A stretch of 64,000 bases of DNA, from contig JAKMXF010000031.1 of assembly GCA_024704765.1 (NCBI GenBank), positions 1 to 64,000 on the forward strand, given 5' to 3'. Shown here piece by piece: positions 35,489 to 63,399 of the stretch. Position 1 is the first letter of the stretch. The number at the start of each line of letters is the position of its first letter. The notes beneath the pieces are model-generated. The model was given only the letters and a program-made list of their open reading frames with translations. It had not been told where the DNA came from and made no database searches. Origin of the DNA: Oopsacas minuta (lineage: Eukaryota > Animalia > Porifera). The position numbers were made by a program, and so were the translations under genes.

Positions 35489-38400
35489 TTACTGATCTCC
35501 TGGATCAACTTCTCCAGGTGGGCCTATAAACAAACAACAAATAAACAATCAGTACGACGTATCATCTGTAGCAAAAGATCTCTCAGATTTGGTACATTTC
35601 AATATACTTTTAAGGAAATTTTGTGAGAAGAGATGTCTCGCTTATAGAATAGAAATCAATTGAGTGTCTAAGGCCACAGTTAATGAGAAACTTGTTTCAG
35701 CTACACGTTAGATACACCTGAACAAACATTCTGGCGGGCTACTCATTATTTTGTGAGATATCAGCTGGGAAATTAGTTCATTGACTTCATTTAACAATAA
35801 TATTAAAATCAATAAAGTCAAGTTTGCTATGAGAACTGTCTAGACTATGAATAAGATACTTCTATTGTACTCTAGCCGGTTTATACAACTTGTATTTAAA
35901 TACATTGAGTAAAATGGTGAAATAATGACAATAATGACAATANNNNNNNNNNNNNNNNNNNNNNNNNNNNNNNNNNNNNNNNNNNNNNNNNNNNNNNNNN
36001 NNNNNNNNNNNNNNNNNNNNNNNNNNNNNNNNNNNNNNNNNNNNNNNNNNNNNNNNNNNNNNNNNNNNNNNNNNNNNNNNNNNNNNNNNNNNNNNNNNNN
36101 NNNNNNNNNNNNNNNNNNNNNNNNNNNNNNNNNNNNNNNNNNNNNNNNNNNNNNNNNNNNNNNNNNNNNNNNNNNNNNNNNNNNNNNNNNNNNNNNNNNN
36201 NNNNNNNNNNNAATAATGACAATAATGACAATACCAGTAAGGTAGCCAAATCAGATGTGGGTGGTGGAGCTGAAACATGTTTCCAACTAACAGTGGACTA
36301 ACAATTGAAAATCAGTGAAAATTGGAAATACAAAAGTAAAGCAATTCTTAAGTATAAATAGAGGAAATATTTTGAGGAATAATGACCTGTAAAACTGAGA
36401 TTTTCTGTGAGTTATCGTCGAGTAGACATAACTACCCAAAAGCTAATCAATGAATGATACAGTAGGCACTCGAAGAGTGACTTCAACTGACAGGAAATAC
36501 TTAACACAGATTCCATCAAACTTATCAAGAACATAAGACAAAAAGTGTATTCTTATTCTTCCATACAGCTTGATTATATATTTTATATTACGATATGGAA
36601 GTCTAATATCTTTTGCATAGACTTATATTACACGAAGTGTATGGGCCCGTAGGCTGTAGCAGCGCTGCATTCGTCTGGATAATACCCTGCTTAGCACCGC
36701 GTTCATTCCATTATGGTATCTCACTGACTGTTCAAACAATACAAAGAGGTAATTAGATTAGGTTACTCACCATCCTGCATATCAGATGTCCATAGAGTTA
36801 GGTTATCTCTTAACAGCTGCATTATCAGAGTAGAATCTTTGTAGGAATCTTCATTCAGACTGTCTAGCTCTGCGATTGCATCATCAAAAGCGCCCTTGGC
36901 AAGTTCGCATGCTTTGGTTTGATCATCATGGATTTCGTAGTTGAACACTGAGTAGTTAAGAGCTAGTCTATGAGAAGAAAAGGTGTTGAGTACATTTATA
37001 ATATTTGGTGCTGAACAATGATTACTTACCCAAGTCGGATTGGGTGAGTGGATGGAAGACCCTGTAATTCACTGTCTACGTTCACTCCATTTACTGCCAG
37101 AGTTAGAGCTTCTTTGTATGCTTCATGGGCACGGTGAGCAACTTCTTTACGCGGTTTATCTAGTTTATATTCCGCCATGTAGCGGCAGTAATCTCCTTTC
37201 CTACACACATAGGTAACTAATCCAACAAATTACATAATCTATATTATTAAATCTCAATTGTTATATGTATGTTTGTCCGTTGTCAAGGAAAGATTTATGG
37301 TATGCAATTTTGAAATCGTTGCATAACTATGTGTTTATCGTGTTTATTAAGGAAGAAAATAAAATTCAATAAAACTTCACCAAATATATCGAATATGCTG
37401 AATCCGATTTTCACACTTTTGGATTAATCACAAGTGAGTTTATTGTTGTTTGTATGAATTAAAGTAAACAAATTTCAATATTGTTGTAGAATCATACTTT
37501 CAAAGACTATCCTGGGGTAATCGAGTATACTGAGTCTGAATATTGTAAACAACATTAATATTATTAAAACTACAATTGTTGTTATTGCGTTGAATACTTC
37601 GAGGTATATTGCGCCGAGTTCATCGCGAAGCGACGAGTCTAAGGCTCATGATGTAGAAATCAGTTTGTATGTACTCGTTTTGGAGAAAAGATGTACTTTT
37701 CGCCGAAACGAATTTCTTTCATTCTATTAATTATATAAAAAACATATTTGGATAAGATGAACTTCAGTTAGTACAAATTATTGTTGCCAGGGCGGTAGAC
37801 CGTCGACACTGGGGGAGGAATAAACTAAATAATTAGTGAAGCAGGTTTGCAATTAAATGAATAGATACCGTAGCTAGAAGTTACTACTGTATTCTCACTA
37901 GAATATCCGATCTGCCAAATATTGAATCGGATGAATGAGTGAGAATACAGTAGTTGATGAGGTTAATGTATATACAAATCCACTTGTATAATTCGATACT
38001 ATTTTCATCTTCCAACGAGTGCCGGATTATGCAGTTTTCACTGTCCACTGTAAGCACAACATTTCTAANNNNNNNNNNNNNNNNNNNNNNNNNNNNNNNN
38101 NNNNNNNNNNNNNNNNNNNNNNNNNNNNNNNNNNNNNNNNNNNNNNNNNNNNNNNNNNNNNNNNNNNNNNNNNNNNNNNNNNNNNNNNNNNNNNNNNNNN
38201 NNNNNNNNNNNNNNNNNNNNNNNNNNNNNNNNNNNNNNNNNNNNNNNNNNNNNNNNNNNNNNNNNNNNNNNNNNNNNNNNNNNNNNNNNNNNNNNNNNNN
38301 NNNNNNNNNNNNNNNNNNNNNNNNNNNNNNNNNNNNNNNNNNNNNNNNNNNNNNNNNNNNNNNNNNNNNNNNNNNNNNNNNNNNNNNNNNNNNNNNNNNN

Positions 38401-39802
38401 NNNNNNNNNNNNNNNNNNNNNNNNNNNNNNNNNNNNNNNNNNNNNNNNNNNNNNNNNNNNNNNNNNNNNNNNNNNNNNNNNNNNNNNNNNNNNNNNNNNN
38501 NNNNNNNNNNNNNNNNNNNNNNNNNNNNNNNNNNNNNNNNNNNNNNNNNNNNNNNNNNNNNNNNNNNNNNNNNNNNNNNNNNNNNNNNNNNNNNNNNNNN
38601 NNNNNNNNNNNNNNNNNNNNNNNNNNNNNNNNNNNNNNNNNNNNNNNNNNNNNNNNNNNNNNNNNNNNNNNNNNNNNNNNNNNNNNNNNNNNNNNNNNNN
38701 NNNNNNNNNNNNNNNNNNNNNNNNNNNNNNNNNNNNNNNNNNNNNNNNNNNNNNNNNNNNNNNNNNNNNNNNNNNNNNNNNNNNNNNNNNNNNNNNNNNN
38801 NNNNNNNNNNNNNNNNNNNNNNNNNNNNNNNNNNNNNNNNNNNNNNNNNNNNNNNNNNNNNNNNNNNNNNNNNNNNNNNNNNNNNNNNNNNNNNNNNNNN
38901 NNNNNNNNNNNNNNNNNNNNNNNNNNNNNNNNNNNNNNNNNNNNNNNNNNNNNNNNNNNNNNNNNNNNNNNNNNNNNNNNNNNNNNCTTCTACAGTAATA
39001 CCATATGCAGAATTTCCGAAACATACCGTACACTGTTACTCTGCCGCGGACGGACGGAATGACTTAACACATCGTTAATGGCAAAAGGACATTTCCCTAG
39101 AAGCTGTACTAATTGTCATATACAGGAACCATGGAGATATTATAAGGGTTATTCGGAGCACTCGGCCCCTAAGGCTCCCTATATCAAATATTCATACGAA
39201 TAAATCAGTAAATAGAGGAAAGACTGATAGCAATATTCTTTCCGATCACTGTTTATAAATGGTTGCTCTAGTTATGGCATAGGGAAAGATCCGAAATATA
39301 AATTCGTCAAAAATGGTACGCCAAGAGGAGCTACTAGATAATCCATAGTCCGGCACGGTTATTTTAGACTAAAGATATAAGATACATGGGGCATCCACCT
39401 CTAGAGAAGACATAGCGTTGGTAGAGAAAGCGATCGGGTTGTATAGTGTACACATATTTCTAAGTTAACTAACTTTGAGTATTTCAACTTTTTTCTCGTT
39501 TCGTGGCTCTCGACCCAATTCTTTCTGCTCAATAGAGCTTATTATTCTCCAGGATGTTCTCCTACTACCGATCACATTCTTGTAGGCAACTGAGAGCAGA
39601 TTCCTCTCTTCTGTCAACAGGACTTGTCCATGTTTGTGTTTCAGTTTGAGAAAGTCTTCCATTGACTGAACCATTTCTAGATCGTATTCATAAATAATAC
39701 CATAAAGATAACCAATAATGCTTACTTACCGTCATATCTCTCTGCTTGCTCAGCAAGTTTAGCAGCGAACACTTTAGGACTGAATTCCTTATTCTCAGAC
39801 AT
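35489..39802 (-). CDS. 14-3-3 protein; visible exons 39802-39730, ~39676-39476, ~37201-37030, ~36961-36770, 35523-35489; one middle exon missing, probably in the gap 38069-38987
   Basis: [90 protein letters not shown]. Confidence 0.92.
35922..36233. repeat. (AATAATGAC)n tandem repeat spanning assembly gap 35943-36211
   Basis: The same 9-bp unit lies on both sides of the N run. Confidence 0.8.
38069..38987. other. Assembly gap
   Basis: Run of N. Confidence 1.
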
Positions 39803-40066
39803 GTAACTAGAGTATTCGTTTTGTAACTAGACTTATTCAATCCTATTTATTGAATAGAAAGCTTTCTCTTGACGTCCTTAGCAACCATAGCAACTGTATT
39901 ATAACTAGTAGAATTACGTAAACCCAATTTAGATCTCTAATGGTAGTATAGTGATTGATAATTGATACTCTTATACTGACTGATTGGGAGATATTACTGT
40001 ACAGATTCCCACTATTCATATTGGTAATGAGATATATTACACTGAACACAAAGATTGTTTTACTTA

Positions 40067-49954: not shown

Positions 49955-50316
49955 TACAGGTAGCAGTGGATACCGGTAGTAGTGGATACCGGTAACAATG
50001 GATACTGGTCGCAGTGGATACAGGTAACAGTGGATACAGGTAGCAGTGGATACTGGTAACACTGGATACTGATAGCAGTGGATACAGGTAACAGTGGATA
50101 CTGGTAGCAGTGGATACAGGTAACAGTGGATACTGGTAGCAGTGGATACAGGTAACAATGGAAACAGGTAGCAGTGGATACTGATAGCAGTGGATACAGT
50201 TAACAGTGGATACTGGTAGCAGTGGATACAGGTAACAATGGAAACAGGTAGCAGTGGATACTGGTAACACTGGATACTGATAGCAGTGGATACAGGTAAC
50301 AGTGGATACAGGTACC
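49955..50316. repeat. Minisatellite, 16-bp unit (agtggatac(a/t)ggta(a/g)c), ~22 copies
   Basis: Tandem array read directly from the sequence. Confidence 0.95.
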
Positions 50317-50605
50317 AGGGGCATCTATTGTATGCTAGTTATAAGAACCATGGATATGCACTAATTGAATAATGATGTCCGCCACAATGCTACACATGTT
50401 CTCACCTATACACGATTTGTAAAGACGGAAACTAAGAAAGCAAAGTTAGGGAAAAATACAAATAAAATGTTTGTATTTAGCAAAGTAGTATTCAACAAAT
50501 CACTTCATTTATATATACAAAAGCTAGCAATATAATTTGACAGGGTTAGTCTTATCGCAGTCTTATCGCCCCTCCTAGGGCTAAGGAGTATGGGAGTCGG
50601 GATTC

Positions 50606-52334: not shown

Positions 52335-53020
52335 TTAACTTCCAGAAAGCGGAAGCATGCTTGTGACACCCCCCCCCACTCACCAACAAAGCACTCCATG
52401 TGTCTACGTCCCTATATATTGTCGTTGAGAGCCAGTTTCCTTTCGATTACATGTATATTAAGATAAATATCCCGAAAAGACAACAAACTTCTATTTGTAA
52501 ATTAGTATTATATTGTAAATACCAATTCTGCTAACGTCATCACTAAATCCCGCCTAAACAACTCAACCACAAATTTATGAACCTCAACGATGTCACAAAG
52601 GATCCCCGTACCCAATAAATGATTCTGGTTGAAACCTGAAACCGTACTTGTAGCTACGGTCCTGTAGTTTAATAAGTATAGTTTGTCTATAAATGCCAAA
52701 TACACACTGGCCTTCTCGAGAACATATCTGCCGTATAGTAAGTAGGCTATTGTATCTTCCTCTAGCGAAGTTAAGATCAAAAATAAGAGAGGGAAGTTTC
52801 TAAGCGGGGATAGTTGAATACTAGCGCAACGCTTGCTAGTACGCTGTACGACAGCTTAATGCTTCGCGTTAACCTATGTATTGATTAAACAGCTAAAGCT
52901 TATAGAGTTATTGGTCGCGTAGCGACCAATAACTCGAGCCAATAATATACCCATCTGACTTAGCCCATGATATACTCATTATTACGCAATCAACAGAATA
53001 GTGAAATGTAAGTAATCAAT

Positions 53021-53359
53021 TCAGTGATAATTGGGATACAGCTGTTTATAGTCCTTTATGTGATTTTCTCTTGTATCCTGGCTACAACAACCTGTAGCAA
53101 TCAGGCGTTGAGCCATTTCCCTAACCCGCAAATCATTCAGGCTCCTAAACTCCCTGATACTTGTATCACTTACAACCCGCCGATGTAGCAGCTGTCTCAT
53201 CCTCAACAGTTTCTGGCGTCTTCTAACTGCTAACATGCGCCTTCTCTCAGCCTCTCTGCGCATTCGTGTTATGGCTCGAAACCGACGCTGTATTAGTATA
53301 ATCGGCATAATCCTGGGTGAGTTCTGTGCCAATAATTGTCCAGAAGGAATAGGGGCCAT
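53021..53359 (-). CDS. Orphan Arg-rich small protein, 112 aa (copy A)
   Basis: 96/112 aa identical to 63025-63399; many synonymous differences. Confidence 0.7.
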   Translation of the reverse strand: MAPIPSGQLLAQNSPRIMPIILIQRRFRAITRMRREAERRRMLAVRRRQKLLRMRQLLHRRVVSDTSIREFRSLNDLRVREMAQRLIATGCCSQDTRENHIKDYKQLYPNYH

Positions 53360-53973
53360 CTTTTTGTCAAAGTACAGTCAATTCAATAATATCTAATTCA
53401 GCAATAACTAATCACATAAAACCATATATTAAATAGTACTTAGCCCATGCGCTACTAGCATACTATAGGCAGATGAAACTAAAGTGAACTACTGACACGT
53501 GTTGATATGTAATTTGGCTTCTGGGTCAGATATTTTTTAAGTGCTGGACCACACAGTGGGCTATAATTGCGAATTATTAGTATTAGGGTTTACGCGTTCA
53601 ATTTTAGAGATAGGTTTATAAAATACATTATTACTGTATAGTAAGTCGACTATTGTGGTTCTTTTGTTGATTTCAATTTTGTTCTATCACATCAGGTTTT
53701 CAATATATGACGTAATCTTAATTACCATATACAGTAATACAGAAATCTAGATATACACTGAACTGAGAATTATTAAAAGAAATAGAATATGAATATATTA
53801 TGGCTATGGTAACTGAAGAATAACTAACATACGAATATCTTACTGATGAATTAATTTATTTAACTGCTGGACCAGTTTGCATTATATTCAAATATTTGTG
53901 CGTCACTTATATTATTTCACTTCTTTGAGTGCCTAAGTTTTATCCGAATTGTTCCACTTTTTTCTAAATAGCC

Positions 53974-55819
53974 ATGCCTAGAATGACAAATGCGAATGCT
54001 CGGGAGAAGCTTTCTTCCACTCTAAAGCAGTTCCGTTCCATTACGGGAGAGAGTATTGGGGTCGTATTTACGTGGAGAGGAAAGTTAGCTACAATGGGGA
54101 CTGAGAATTTCCAAAATTTGATCCATTCTCTGAAGAATGAATTTTGTGGGTCAATAGTTGGTTCACATCGTGAGACAGACACTGAGAAGTTCAATCAAGA
54201 CAAAGAAATCATCGATCAGTTAGATGGAGATTTAGAGAGCTACAGTGTCCCAACGCTTCGAAGACTAGTGTCATGGATCACTAAACGCTCAGTTGGTGAG
54301 TTTATTTTATTGACAGATATGAATACTTGACTAAGCGATTATGTGTGAATATTCTAGATTATGTTAAGCCAAACTTATCCTGAATTGCTGACACAACGAT
54401 GATACATTTTAGACATTCGTTTGAATTCTATGCGAAGATACCATTCTTCATACTCGCCTTAGCTTAATGCTGTGATTAAACATTACATTTTAGGAAAGAA
54501 TGTGTCCTTCTGGAATGACGCATCTCTTGTACCTTCATTCTGGCCGAGAGATGTGGAATATAAGAATATTAAACATTCCAACAAAAAGACTCTATGTCGG
54601 ATTATTCGAGGTTATAGGAGGAATGACAACCTAGAGGAACCTGTTAATGGCGTCCGAGACAGATCTCCCCATATTAGCCCTCAGAAGACTCCTCGCGTTG
54701 TTCCCAAGAAATTTAAGAAAAGTCCCGAGAAGAAAAATAAATTCGAACACCATCCAGTTATGACACCGATCACTTCTCTTCCACATTCCTCTTCCTATAT
54801 TCCAGTTTCTGATGTCGACTCTAGTTATAGTGAAGGTTTCCTTCCAGGGTTCCGACAGTTTGAACACTCAACTGATGATGTAATTGTTCCTACTACTACA
54901 CCTAGTTTAGTATCTCAGTTAGGTATAACACCTTTGCAACCCATCTTTGAATTTTCACCGATACTTAACCAGAAGGACCGAGATCAATCATTGTTAGAAT
55001 TGTCCACTAAGAATACATTCCTCACTGACACGTGTATGAACACCTTTTCTGTAAGTTAAAATGTGATAAATACAAGTTAATTGCGTTCAATTTTCACATA
55101 TTCATAGGAACTCCTGAAGAATGTGTATCCTCATGTGCAGGGTCTCCGGGACACGATTCTCTCTAAGGTGTTATATAGGTGCCATGCTTACTATGTACGA
55201 GTTTTGTAACACGAATTATTTTAATGTATCTTCTTTAGAACAGACAATTTGTCAGAGCTCCTCGTCCCAGCATGCAAATTCACCATGATGGAGGACTCCA
55301 TTGGGTATGTTCCAGTGTCGATGTTGAGGGCAATGTTACGGTGTATGATTCCCTGGCAACTGATAGAACGAGTGAGGAGCTGGATATACAACTGGCTCTG
55401 CTATATGGACGTAGTGCTGGTAAGATGACAGTAACATTTGCCCCTATTCAACAACAGAGGTGGTGCGGACTGCAGATTATTCGCGGCAGCAGTTTGTCTT
55501 GCAATAGCGAACGGTGATGATCCACAACATATTCGCTGGAAGCAAAATAGGATGAGATCGTACCTCAGTGATTGCTTCAAAACTGAGACTTGATAGCAAG
55601 CAGTTATGGACTAAGATACTCACTTCTTCCAGGTCAGAATTTAAGATTGAGTTGAGGTGTCTCTGTAACCTGCCAGAATTTGCCTCGAGTAACATGATTG
55701 AGTGCTCGAAATGTCGCCAGTGGTTTCATAAACCATGTGTAGGACTAATCGATGACAGCAATGATGTTGAGTGTTTTTCCTGTCCTCAATGCAGCCCTCA
55801 TCGATCTTCATTACCATAA
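53974..55819 (+). pseudogene. Accessory gene: NRF1/EWG-like DNA-binding domain + Ulp1-like (C48) protease + PHD finger; exons 53974-54295, 54494-55050, 55108-55167, 55239-55819; two frameshifts in the last exon
   Basis: In-phase GT-AG introns. Ulp1 triad in GLHWV, VYDSL and QQQRGGADC. PHD CLCNLPE...MIECSKCRQWFHKPCVGL...CPQC. The N-terminus resembles the NRF1 DNA-binding domain by hand alignment. Confidence 0.75.
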
Positions 55820-55937
55820 TAAATCCAATATCAGTATGTACTCATTATCCCATTTAGTAAGGACACACATACACTCTAGTGCAATTATGATCTCATTGAT
55901 CTCTATGTATTACAAAAATACTCACTACATGTATATA

Positions 55938-58660
55938 CTATTTGCCTAATGTTTTGGGCTTATTGCTTATGTTATTAAGACACGCTAGGAAATATCTTGT
56001 GGTGTAAAAGACGTTTTCAAGACGCATGTATGCGATCTGAGTGGCAATTCTTCGAAGTGAAGAGAACAACTGTTCACAAACTTGTGAATTAATTTTCTTC
56101 ATCTCTTCTGTTTTAATATTTCTCAATGAGTAGGATGAACTACACTTGTGATTTGTTGAATGAAATCTATCGATGAGAAAAGTTGTATCCATAAATACCT
56201 TGGGATCTCTATAAAGAACAAAATGCGAATCATGATACTCCTATAACAAACGGTGCATTATTCCTAATTATATTCGTAGAACAATTTCGAATCTGCGAAC
56301 TCAAAACGTATGTAATATACCTTTTCATGCAAGTCTTGTGTAAGTTGCAAGCGTTATCATAGATAATAACCTTTGGCTGTACTTTGAACAATTATCCGCC
56401 AGCTCAACACTTTCATTCTGGTAAATTGGTATCCTAAGAAGTATTAAATAGTTTTAGCTGAACTATGACAGAATGAAATTACTTACTTGTAGTGTTTAGT
56501 GAAAGCTGGGAAGTAGTTGTAGTGCTCATCACTTTTGGGACAGAATTCAACTATTTTTTGAGAAGGTTTTCTGGACAAACCATCAATTTGGATGAATATT
56601 CTCTTCAGCAGTGAGGCAATCATTGGATGTAACGTAACGTTTCCATCTATGTCTACTGATGTATGTATTGAATTGATCAGGTATTCAAGTGTGTGCATTT
56701 TAGTGTATATAATGTTTAGGGTTTCTTCATTGGCTGATCCTCCCTGAGACAGATGTACTAAAGCTTTCTCTCTTGTGAATTCAGTAGAGATAATTGAACA
56801 ATCCTGTCATCGCGTCAGTACGACAAAGAAGCTGTATACTCTTTCTAGTTCTCTCATATCCTTCGGTTATTGACACCCAATGATATAATTAGAAGAATTG
56901 AAGATTATGTAAGCACAAAATTCCTTGTTATTCAATTTTTCTAGCAATTCATCAAATCTATCCTCTTGAAGGCCTTGCAAACTATACTCTAAGAGTGCAT
57001 TTCGAAGATCTACATCATGAATGAATACCCTCTCAGATGTATCAATCATGGGATACTTCTGCTCGTAATCAACTGCTTCTTCCACTTCAGGTAAGGATCT
57101 CATTATTCCCATGGCAATTCCATCTATAACAACTATTTTAGGCTCCAGCTTGCACTGAGAGCAAGTGTAGTGTGACGAATAATCGAGGTCAACCAATCTC
57201 AAATACGAGTTCCAAGCAAGATGTACTACGTGATACTTGAAGCTACCTTTTCTTCCCATTCGTTGCAGTTTCTGATTTTTGGCACTATTAAAATTGAGAA
57301 TTTCGCCATTATGTAATATGAGAATTTGACCCAAGTTTTATAATATACTAACCTCAAGTACCCATATGGAGTGTTCCTTGACATCGTCATGAGTTCACTG
57401 TAATCGCATAATAGGCTGTAATGAATGAAGTATTTGTTGTTAACATTCAGTAGTAACATATTCTGTCCTTCGTAAACAGCTTGACACTTGCAAGAGCCAT
57501 CACAGATAGAGCTGTACACTACAAAATGCATATGATTTGGATAATAAAATATAATTTTTCCTGTAACGCTTTAGCAATAAATGTAGGTACGTACTACCTT
57601 TGTTTTGGTTGAGTCTAATCACGTCATTTTTTGTGTATATAACAATTCCAGTGTTTTCTAGTTTAAGCTGGTCTTCTCTGTTGAATTCGTAGCCGTTCTT
57701 ACAGTACTTTTGTTCAGGAATCAACATTTTTGGTAACTGGATACCTTCACGAAGCTGCTGGTCGTAACTTGAACTAAGCGCTTCATCAAGAATAAATGGA
57801 ATTGGAGCAGAGGTCACTACATTGTATTCAATCTTTCGTTGACTTTTTATTGAAGGTTGATCAGTCATTGCGAGGATATTTTGGAGCTTTGTTTGTTGCT
57901 TACATTTCCCGAGACAAGAATTACAGGAGCAACCACCAATAGTTCTCAAGGTAAAGTTATGAAGGGTGTCAAGCACTAGGATAGATATATTCGTTGGACT
58001 GATTAAGTAATACATCATCTCTTCAAACACATTGGCCTCACAAACTTTCAAGCACATAATCTGTGAACATTGGACGAATGCTTGATAGTGAAGACAATAA
58101 TCATTGTTACAACAAGAGCAAACTTGAAGATTAGTATCAATGACGAGGCTCGTTTTCTTGAAACCCAGTTTTCCTACAGATGTGATATGCAATATAATTA
58201 TTAATAAACAGAATTGTCTTTGCTAATATGCTCTCCTACAGCATTAAACAATTAACTGGGTTGTAAACAAATTTCATACCAATTGTAATAACAAATACCT
58301 TGTGAATGTTCGTAATCTGGTATTATGGTGTATTTACTGTTCTCTAATAGGAACAGTTTAGATTCCTCTACTAAGATCCTAAACATACTGATCTAAAGTA
58401 GATAGTTTAATATCACTGACTTCTGCGAAGTACTCATCATGAACACGATAACCTAGGACATTGGTAACAAGAGATATAATTATAGAACTTAAATAGACAA
58501 TACCTTGTGATACATTGAATTCTGCATTGATTAGCGGATCTTCGGATAGAATTACGTTATTAACATCATCAGTCAGAGAAAGAATAGTGTCTTCTTCAGT
58601 CTTTCGCTTCTTTTTGTTACAATTGAGCGATATCGTTGAGTAGATTATGTTATCTGCCAT
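55938..58660 (-). pseudogene. KDZ-type (HMGXB3/Zisupton-related) transposase, spliced and disrupted
   Basis: YTCSQCKLEPKIVVIDGIAMG, PKVIIYDNACNLHKTC (~56380-56330), FLIDRFHSTNHKC and INSQVCEQLFS. Upstream Cys-rich CxC-like segments. Confidence 0.8.
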
Positions 58661-58977
58661 TAACTCAGCCGGAAGTTTTACTTAGGAATTACAATAGCTA
58701 TTTATACAGAAGTAACCTTTCAAAGAAATTCCAATTGCCATTGTGGTTACATGGTTGCGCATATGACAACTGGTATGATTTGTGGTTAAAATTATCTAAT
58801 CTTCAAAACCACTATGTATATACTCTACACCCCACTATTTATTATATATGTGCATGGGTACTAGTAGCGCATGCGCTAGGTACTTTTTAATACCTCCCGT
58901 ACAAATTCTTGGAGGGGGTAGATCCTTGCCTAATTACAGTATGTAAATTATCATCCCATCACAAATTAAAGGAACAG

Positions 58978-58979
<2 letters not shown>

Positions 58980-59040
<61 letters not shown>

Positions 59041-59062
59041 TATTATTATTATTATTATTATT
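58980..59062. repeat. (ATT)n microsatellite
   Basis: Direct read. Confidence 0.95.
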
Positions 59063-59096
59063 AGAGTATTTATTGTATTGATATCGTAATGTAGTA

Positions 59097-62090: not shown

Positions 62091-63024
62091 TTGGCATTTT
62101 ATTTTTTTGGCCGCATGACGGAAATATTCCTGAATTTTGGTTTTTCACTTGATAATCTCCACGACATACTCATGTTTATCATGGAGTTATCACACCTTAT
62201 GATTTGCTCAAAACATTAGGTGGTGTATTAAGCGATTGGCAGCTTAAGGAGTATTGAGATATTCTTATCCTATGTGTTAATACAGAACTTTAACCCTATT
62301 GAGATATCTTTTGATTTATCGATCGTAATTGGTTTATATGACTTTACAAGAGGAGAAACTTTGTTTATAATCTTTATGATTGTATTTTTGAAAATTGGTA
62401 ATTCTATGTGACTACAGGCCGCCTATACCTGTAACATTGTATATATTTTTTCTAGGACTTTTCCCAGTGGTAATTTAATAATATTTTAGTAATGAATAAT
62501 TCATTCCACTGCAATAGTTTAGTAGAATAAGGGGTTAGCAGGCTAAAGTCAAAAATACATACTTTGAATTTTATTTGCAGTTTTCAGTAGGGTCCGGACA
62601 AAGTTATCAATTTCTTGATTTTATACAAGGATTAATCAATCAATCAGTAATTATTCTTCAAATGATTAGCAATGCTACAATACTTTAAGTTGATATACAA
62701 TCACTCTCTGAAAGTTTGAAGTCATTGTGACATATACTTCATCATGGAAAAGTCGTTAAATTTTGATAAAGTTAGTTTTGAGAAAATCATGTTTGAAGTT
62801 AAAATATTGCTTTATTTGAAATTCGATGCTTTGTCGGGTTTTAAAAGCTATTATTATTGATTGCGACACATTTGAGATTACGGTTGTAACAATTCCACCA
62901 CTGATGCATGAATGACATATCTTTCTACTCATAATACTAACGTATTCACATCAATATGGGTTTTATGTGATTAGTTATTGCTGAATTAGATATTATTGAA
63001 TTTGACTGTTCTCTGAACAAAAAG

Positions 63025-63399
63025 ATGCCCCCCATTCCTTCTGGACAATTCTTGGCACAGAACCCACCCAGGATTATGCCGATTATACTGATACAGCGTA
63101 GGGTTCGAGCAATAGCACGAATGCGCAGAGAAGCTGAGAGAAGGCGCATGTTAGCAGTCAGAAGACGCCAGAAACATTTGAGGATGAGACAGCTTGTACA
63201 TCAGCGGATTTTGCTTGATACAAGTATCAGGGAGTTCAGGAGTCTCAATAATTTACGCGTTCGTGAGATGACTCAACGCCTGATTGGTACAGGGTGTTGT
63301 AGCCAGGATACACGAGAAAATCACATTAAGGACTACAAAGAGCTCTATCCCAATCATCATCGAATTGGTTGCTTCTATTTTCACTATCCTGTTTATTGA
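63025..63399 (+). CDS. Orphan Arg-rich small protein, 124 aa (copy B)
   Basis: Inverted paralog of 53021-53359; CGA replaces copy A's TGA, extending the ORF by 12 codons. Confidence 0.7.
   Translation: MPPIPSGQFLAQNPPRIMPIILIQRRVRAIARMRREAERRRMLAVRRRQKHLRMRQLVHQRILLDTSIREFRSLNNLRVREMTQRLIGTGCCSQDTRENHIKDYKELYPNHHRIGCFYFHYPVY

Follow-up and report, generated by a model that had tools for sequence, protein, structure and literature searches.

Can a DNA transposon encode its own NRF1-type DNA-binding protein, and is such a protein matched to the ends of the element that carries it? This question is raised by a locus of the glass sponge Oopsacas minuta, within the 64,000 nucleotides that we analysed (contig JAKMXF010000031.1 of assembly GCA_024704765.1, positions 1 to 64,000; hereafter the window). 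An element of 5,474 bp contains a gene for a transposase, likely of the KDZ type, and a second gene, convergent with the first, whose product begins with an NRF1-like module. As argued below, the element is probably a two-gene cut-and-paste KDZ transposon, in which dimers of the second protein bind arrays of palindromes at the ends and mark these ends for the transposase. The analysis covered the window copy, which belongs to a family designated A, and ten further loci, among them an internally deleted O. minuta copy (L002), a family B copy from another assembly (L004) and four family D copies from a third assembly (L008-L011).

The second gene begins with an NRF1-like module

The two genes run tail to tail, as the initial annotation had described, with stop codons ending at 55819 (plus strand) and 55938 (minus strand) and 118 bp between them. 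The plus-strand gene consists of four exons, and its annotated product is P0001 (LOD99_10372, Oopsacas minuta, GCA_024704765.1). The domain order of the protein is NRF1-like dimerisation domain, NRF1-like DNA-binding domain (DBD), Ulp1-like protease and PHF2/BPTF-type PHD finger, distributed as follows.

53974-54297, plus strand: exon 1, NRF1-like dimerisation domain and start of DBD helix alpha5 (P0001 residues 1-108)
54253-54276, plus strand: TLRR motif in exon 1, holding the Arg equivalent to NRF1 R206
54494-55050, plus strand: exon 2, NRF1-like DBD loop and helix (FWPRDVEYKNIKH, 54538-54576), Ser/Pro-rich linker and start of the protease domain
55108-55167, plus strand: exon 3 (ELLKNVYPHVQGL...), part of the Ulp1-like domain
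55239-55819, plus strand: last exon, Ulp1-like core and PHD finger (55658-55801)
55275-55304, 55341-55355, 55443-55460 and 55459-55482, plus strand: Ulp1-like core residues His, Asp, Gln and Cys, respectively

Contigs of four runs were aligned to the element, and splice joints were read from the joined contigs of run X4. The plus-strand gene gave joints 55050>55108 and 55050>55239, both GT..AG, and the minus-strand gene gave 56208>56321 and 57518>57598, both CT..AC. Splicing as deduced from the sequence is supported by these joints, and both genes of family A are therefore transcribed and spliced. Exon 3 is skipped by the public gene model; the same segment is conserved in P0052.

The N-terminus had been aligned by eye with the DBD of NRF1 and Erect wing. 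This likeness is borne out by four lines of evidence that agree, namely the Pfam profile, the PDB profile, the fold of the DBD and the fold of the dimerisation domain. P0001 residues 1-170 matched Nrf1_DNA-bind (PF10491) at E 3e-6 with 27.5 bits, over a curated cut-off of 23.5, and residues 47-138 aligned with profile positions 87-178 in a match that crosses the exon junction. Single exons of the window gene gave no NRF1 match in Pfam or among PDB sequences; this was a false negative caused by the intron that splits the domain, and it was resolved by the spliced P0001, whose best PDB sequence match is NRF1. The UniRef automatic name of P0001 already includes the NRF1 domain. On the same Pfam profile a whole paralog, P0059, scored 23.0 bits, just below 23.5, and family D exon 2 (L008) scored above the cut-off on its own (24.4 bits, E 2.7e-5).

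With exon 1 as the query, phmmer retrieved 58 relatives from among 1.84 billion representatives, nearly all of them short, exon-sized open reading frames (ORFs). The second exon was recovered in five further families, with Nrf1_DNA-bind a top Pfam match at the same profile positions (E 0.001-0.04), and with profiles from five families NRF1 was the sole PDB match among 177,635 sequences (E 1.4e-5 to 3e-5). Separately, P0020, a predicted protein of 1,341 residues with about 25 identical 50-residue repeats, reached E 1e-11 against exon 1 with no aligned stretch, which is probably a repeat artefact.

Structure prediction gave the same result. For an AlphaFold model of residues 86-170 (predicted local distance difference test, pLDDT, 79.8), the top three PDB matches in Foldseek were NRF1 chains (8k4l_A, 8k4l_B and 8k3d_A), with template modelling (TM) scores of 0.64-0.71, root-mean-square deviations (rmsd) of 2.0-2.1 A and probabilities of 0.97-1.00; the next match had a TM-score of 0.36. 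In a model of residues 1-175, residues 1-108 were confident (exon 1 pLDDT 80-92). Residues 2-63 of this model superposed on the NRF1 dimerisation domain (102-169) with Z 5.2 and rmsd 3.4 A, and the MADS-box proteins SRF and MCM1 matched with Z 5.3; these Z values are moderate, and the top six matches were all NRF1 or MADS. SRF is described as the closest fold to the NRF1 dimerisation domain in the NRF1 structure paper (PMC10810270). Foldseek E-values were poor for both models (0.25-0.9), and matches were judged by rank, TM-score, rmsd and probability.

Homology of the second gene to NRF1, over both domains and in NRF1 order, is thus well supported by profile searches and predicted models. NRF1, Erect wing and P3A2 (8K4L, 8K3D; PMC10810270) have in common with the element protein a dimerisation domain followed by a DBD, and the equivalents of R206 and N242 are retained, with Lys at the equivalent of R244. 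In contrast to NRF1, the element protein lacks a counterpart of helices alpha1-alpha2 (about 50 residues at the start of the first domain), is encoded inside a mobile element that is present in multiple copies and diverse families, and carries the Ulp1-like protease and PHD finger in place of the activation region. No Pfam match to the NRF1 C-terminal activation region was found, the C-terminal half being Ulp1-like plus PHD; the protein is therefore a domain homolog and not an NRF1 orthologue.

Palindrome arrays at the element ends

The initial annotation had delimited the element by a 32-nt inverted repeat. The repeat is real, its arms being 91% complementary, and its 24-nt core occurs at only two places in the window, the arms themselves (expected, 0). 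The bounds had to be moved outwards: comparison with the termini of other copies showed that the element in truth runs from 53423 to 58896, and it is exactly after 58896 that contigs from other copies part from the window sequence.

53423-58896: whole transposon copy, family A of Oopsacas minuta, 5,474 bp, delimited by homology of its termini with L002, L004 and L006
53423-53439, plus strand: left outer terminus CATATATTAAATAGTAC, 17 nt, on the side of the NRF1-like gene; the same in L002 and L004 as CATATATTAAAAAGTAC, and CATATAACAAAAAGTAC in L008-L011
53427-53458 and 58861-58892: arms of the 32-nt inverted repeat
53443-53452: core of the palindrome in the only left unit, GCCCATGCGC, which differs from GCGCATGCGC at one position
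58867-58876: core of the palindrome in the only right unit, GCGCATGCGC; this is the NRF1 consensus site and its only perfect match in the window
58880-58896, plus strand: right outer terminus GTACTTTTTAATACCTC, on the transposase side; shared without change by L002, L004 and L006, and GTACTTTTTGTTACCTC in L008-L011

Across the window copy, L002, L004 and L008-L011, the left outer terminus reads CATATA(TT/AC)AAAAAGTAC and the right one GTACTTTTT(AA/GT)TACCTC. Terminal inverted repeats, a KDZ-type feature, are thus present in the element.

Inward of each outer terminus, a unit of 22-24 bp is present once or in tandem, up to eight times, and every unit contains a 10-bp palindrome centred on CATG. 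The family A palindrome, GCGCATGCGC, is the consensus site of the NRF1 homodimer (PMC10810270). It is found at the right end of the window copy, in L002 (three units at each end), in L003 and in L006. With at most one mismatch it occurs three times in the window, twice in the termini, against 0.19 expected; in L002, 6/6 perfect sites lie within the ends. Other copies hold further left-end units, as indicated by a contig loose end at 53434 and by the three units of L002. Further ends carry TCGCATGCGA and GAACATGTTC (L005) and GGACATGTCC (L001).

NRF1 reads each TGCGC half-site through R206, which contacts the CA/TG step, and through N242 and R244, which contact the outer bases (PMC10810270). 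Nearly all exon-1 homologs retain an Arg (LR motif) at the position of R206, and the CATG centre, which holds the CA/TG step, is present in every palindrome variant. The equivalents of N242 and R244 and the outer bases of the palindrome change together by family:

Family A: Asn at the N242 equivalent, Lys at the R244 equivalent; palindrome GCGCATGCGC
Family B: Asn at the N242 equivalent, Tyr at the R244 equivalent; palindrome ACACATGTGC
Family D: Ser at the N242 equivalent, Arg at the R244 equivalent; palindrome GATCATGATC

Such covariation of residues and sites is what the co-evolution of a dimeric binder with its site would look like in sequence.

Protease, PHD finger and transposase

The PHD finger proposed in the initial annotation was recovered by Pfam (PF00628; 27.3 bits in the window and 32.5 bits in L004, cut-off 24), and its profile matches the fingers of PHF2, PHF8 and BPTF, which read histone H3 trimethylated at lysine 4 (H3K4me3), at E 1e-12 to 1e-9. 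The Pfam C48 match of the window exon had E 0.014. When a profile of the protease family was used, the top eleven PDB matches were all C48 (Ulp1/SENP) proteins (E 0.03-0.5) with His, Asp, Gln and Cys aligned, and these four residues are conserved across five families.

A complete Ulp1 His-Asp-Cys triad had also been read from this locus. This is true of family A as a whole; in the window copy His and Asp lie in one frame and the GGADC cysteine in another. Contigs of the four runs show that other copies have an additional AG after 55455 and about 20 additional bases at 55589-55594, so the window copy carries deletions of 2 bp and about 20 bp in the protease region, and these account for the frame split. 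P0059 (LOD99_11152), a paralog of 493 residues with 98% identity, is open through both deletion sites, from the protease into the PHD finger.

The minus-strand gene has the following features.

55938-58660, minus strand: spliced transposase gene of probable CxC/KDZ type, with at least seven coding blocks; 5' exons uncertain
56209-56320 and 57519-57597, minus strand: transposase introns, CT..AC joints
58094-58120, 57914-57937 and 57481-57504, minus strand: cysteine clusters
57107-57133, minus strand: VVIDG motif
56338-56367, minus strand: IIYDNACNLH motif
56142-56171, minus strand: DRFH..NH.C motif
56064-56090, minus strand: NSQ.CEQ motif

The four KDZ motifs are thus located on the minus strand as first reported. 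In three families the two C-terminal exons matched KDZ and no other Pfam family, and the matched profile positions are collinear. For Pfam KDZ (PF18758, cut-off 26.6) the last exon of the window copy matched positions 147-203 (E 1e-4, 22.6 bits), L004 matched positions 75-133 (16.9 bits), and L008 matched 145-210 and 76-133 with 17.6 and 13.2 bits, which sum to 30.8. The single-exon scores fall under the cut-off because introns split the domain. CxC4 (PF18717) was matched at E 0.012 with 15.9 bits (cut-off 26.9), and a homolog search with the transposase ORF returned only close relatives. From these motifs and profile matches the transposase is likely of the KDZ type, although each single-exon score stays below the Pfam threshold.

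Three GT..AG joints of plus-strand sense were also seen in X4 inside the minus-strand transposase gene (56660>56720, 56678>56970 and 57088>57140). They may represent spliced antisense transcripts or divergent copies.

Related copies and target duplications

The initial annotation proposed that, if the two genes belong together, they should co-occur between shared termini in multiple copies. This was found: in families B (L004) and D (L008-L011) the two genes again converge between homologous termini, at 40-52% protein identity, and the common layout and termini recur in families A, B and D from three assemblies. L004 proteins are 42-52% identical to those of family A, and the four copies L008-L011, from one assembly, are at least 97.5% identical.

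Target duplications of 7-8 bp lie directly outside the homologous termini in 6/6 complete related copies:

L002: GTATAATT, 8 bp
L009: ATGATTTG, 8 bp
L011: CATAAGTG, 8 bp
L004: GTTATAC, 7 bp (8 bp with the last C included)
L010: CCTTTTG, 7 bp (8 bp with the last C included)
L008: ATTTTGC, 7 bp

TTAA was considered as a target duplication and rejected, as it lies inside the conserved terminus, family D has AACA/TGTT at this place, and the real duplications of 7-8 bp lie outside. Among known KDZ elements, target duplications measure 8 bp in Zisupton and Dileera and 7 bp in Kyakuja (PMC12730594). The element of the window belongs to a multi-copy, recently active group of glass-sponge DNA transposons.

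Internally deleted derivatives were seen in contigs of the four runs. In one of them, 55513 is followed directly by 58786, save for a single additional A between them. This form occurs in all four runs and is deeper in X2 than the internal part of the element; it is likely a non-autonomous derivative that kept the front of the NRF1-like gene and lost the transposase. At L005 5363-7537, two transposase-side termini (GAGGTATTAAAAA...) with different palindromes face each other 2.2 kb apart; they stem either from two elements of different families, both truncated, or from one that is chimeric. At L001 1498-1600, a left-type terminus with its palindrome lies within 100 bp of a right-type terminus and may be a very short derivative of a further family. 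Of the stretch that separates the left end from the start of the NRF1-like gene, about 300 bp (53550-53853) are missing in L001 and L002, through an insertion here or a deletion there.

Flanks and other features of the window

A 364-nt inverted repeat (53004-53367 and 63017-63380, 88% complementary) spans the transposon and about 4 kb to its right, and the left end of the transposon lies 56 bp inward of its left arm. Within this arm is an Arg-rich ORF of 112 amino acids (53021-53359). Contigs of other copies of the left flank diverge at 53413-53423. To the right of the element, at a distance of about 80 bp, is an ATT/TTA microsatellite of about 30 units (58975-59065). Elsewhere, 16-bp units are repeated in tandem at 50000-50381 (at least 15 register shifts), and G+C dips to 0.20 at 38001-40000, against 0.31-0.42 in the rest of the window.

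Proposed mechanism and alternatives

We propose that dimers of the second protein bind the palindromes as NRF1 binds its site. As the units are two helical turns apart, the dimers would coat one face of each end. Bound dimers could then mark or pair the ends and recruit the transposase, which would recognise the conserved outer terminus and cut. More speculatively, the PHD finger and protease might tie the complex to active chromatin and strip silencing or inhibiting SUMO marks.

Several observations weigh against this proposal. That the second protein reads the palindromes is something we infer from the likeness of protein and site to NRF1 and its site; the joint change of contact residues and outer bases spans three families only; and family A, which has the exact NRF1 site, has Lys and not Arg at the R244 equivalent. 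The KDZ scores (22.6, 17.6, 16.9 and 13.2 bits on single exons) are all below 26.6, and on a single exon C48 is also sub-threshold, at 19.3 bits in L004 against a cut-off of 20.7. The window copy itself shows no target duplication (left flank CATAAAAC, right flank CCGTACAA), has one unit per end with the left unit mutated, and carries a broken second gene. It is a mildly decayed copy that would be mobile only with proteins from intact copies, and the 364-nt inverted repeat around it may reflect a later rearrangement that could account for the missing duplication.

The arrays could also be promoter elements. In this explanation, the main rival, they act mainly as promoter or enhancer: the NRF1-like protein or host NRF1 binds them and turns the two gene starts on or off, and the protein is not directly involved in cutting and joining. 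TnpA of En/Spm has both promoter-type and transposition roles, and the two roles of the arrays may likewise coexist. The convergent arrangement puts each array just upstream of a gene start, at distances of 551 bp (second gene) and 236 bp (transposase); promoters are the classic place for NRF1 sites (PMC10810270), and family A has the exact host-type site. Against this stand the position of the arrays, which adjoin the conserved outer termini in inverted orientation at both ends, and their retention in internally deleted copies such as L002 that lack the targets of the promoters. The palindromes of families B and D, moreover, differ from the NRF1 site, which points to an element-encoded binder rather than host NRF1. 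A mainly regulatory role seems unlikely to us, if well worth keeping in view. We consider it very unlikely that the palindromes are instead read by the CxC region of the transposase, with the NRF1-like protein acting elsewhere, for example at host promoters, where it would steer insertion or act on host chromatin through its PHD finger and protease. The transposase does carry three cysteine clusters, and the PHD finger resembles H3K4me3 readers, as such a division of labour would have it; yet the family A palindrome is exactly the sequence recognised by the protein family of which the second gene encodes a member, an invariant Arg is matched by an invariant CA/TG centre, and the 17-nt outer terminus, common across families, is a more natural site for the transposase.

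Finally, the second gene might be a passenger, a captured fragment of a host gene as in Pack-MULEs, with no function in the element. In plants, MULE and CACTA elements are known to carry Ulp1-like fragments as passengers, and the gene is broken in the window copy. Its conservation speaks against this: position, orientation, domain order, catalytic residues and DNA-contact residues persist down to 29-42% identity in three assemblies, an intact paralog (P0059) exists, and the gene is transcribed and spliced. We give this explanation almost no weight.

Relation to known systems

Elements of the Zisupton/KDZ superfamily of DNA transposons (Bohne et al. 2012; Iyer et al. 2014; reviewed in PMC12730594), Ulp1 domains borne by transposons and two-component transposons are each already known. 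Zisupton is said to be named for a zinc finger and a SUMO-protease domain. The present element resembles KDZ/Zisupton elements in its likely KDZ-type catalytic motifs with putative cysteine-cluster region upstream, in its terminal inverted repeats and, as seen in complete related copies, in duplications of 7-8 bp. It differs from them in that the protease is encoded by the other, convergent gene and joined there to an NRF1-like module and a PHD finger, in that the ends carry family-specific palindrome arrays, and in its glass sponge host.

Ulp1-like (C48) protease domains also occur inside the DNA transposons of KI-MULEs and some CACTA elements, where they are usually deemed captured. Those plant elements belong to other superfamilies and another kingdom, and there the protease is not fused to a DNA-binding module matched to the ends. 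A closer parallel in organisation is offered by PIF/Harbinger, with its Myb-like partner, and En/Spm, with TnpA: in both, the transposase is accompanied by another protein that binds DNA sequence-specifically at sites repeated in the subterminal regions, as would be the case in the element described here. The transposase superfamily is unrelated to theirs, the DNA-binding fold is another one, and the proposed binder additionally bears an enzyme domain and one of the chromatin-reader type. The KDZ review (PMC12730594) makes mention of the partner protein in Harbinger. Our literature search found no paper linking Zisupton or KDZ with NRF1, and in that search three features were undescribed: a transposon with an NRF1-type module, the correspondence of this module to the ends of the element that encodes it, and the family-specific palindromes.

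If the likely KDZ assignment holds, KDZ elements occur in glass sponges as well, where their exact ends and target duplications can be given. If the proposal is right, the element would follow Harbinger and En/Spm as a second kind of two-component DNA transposon, one with a binder whose fold and site can be named from a solved structure; because both are known from structure, the proposed recognition of the ends is directly testable. The matched series of proteins and sites (GCGCATGCGC with N/K, ACACATGTGC with N/Y and GATCATGATC with S/R) could show how the NRF1 fold reads DNA. The element also raises the question of whether the NRF1 transcription factor family of animals is related by descent to a transposon protein. 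The NRF1/Erect-wing module may have begun as the end-binder of a KDZ element, or been exchanged with one repeatedly, so that NRF1 and its promoter site would derive from a domesticated transposon protein and its subterminal repeats; we think such an origin quite unlikely. Descent could also have run in the reverse direction, by a single capture of host NRF1 by a sponge transposon.

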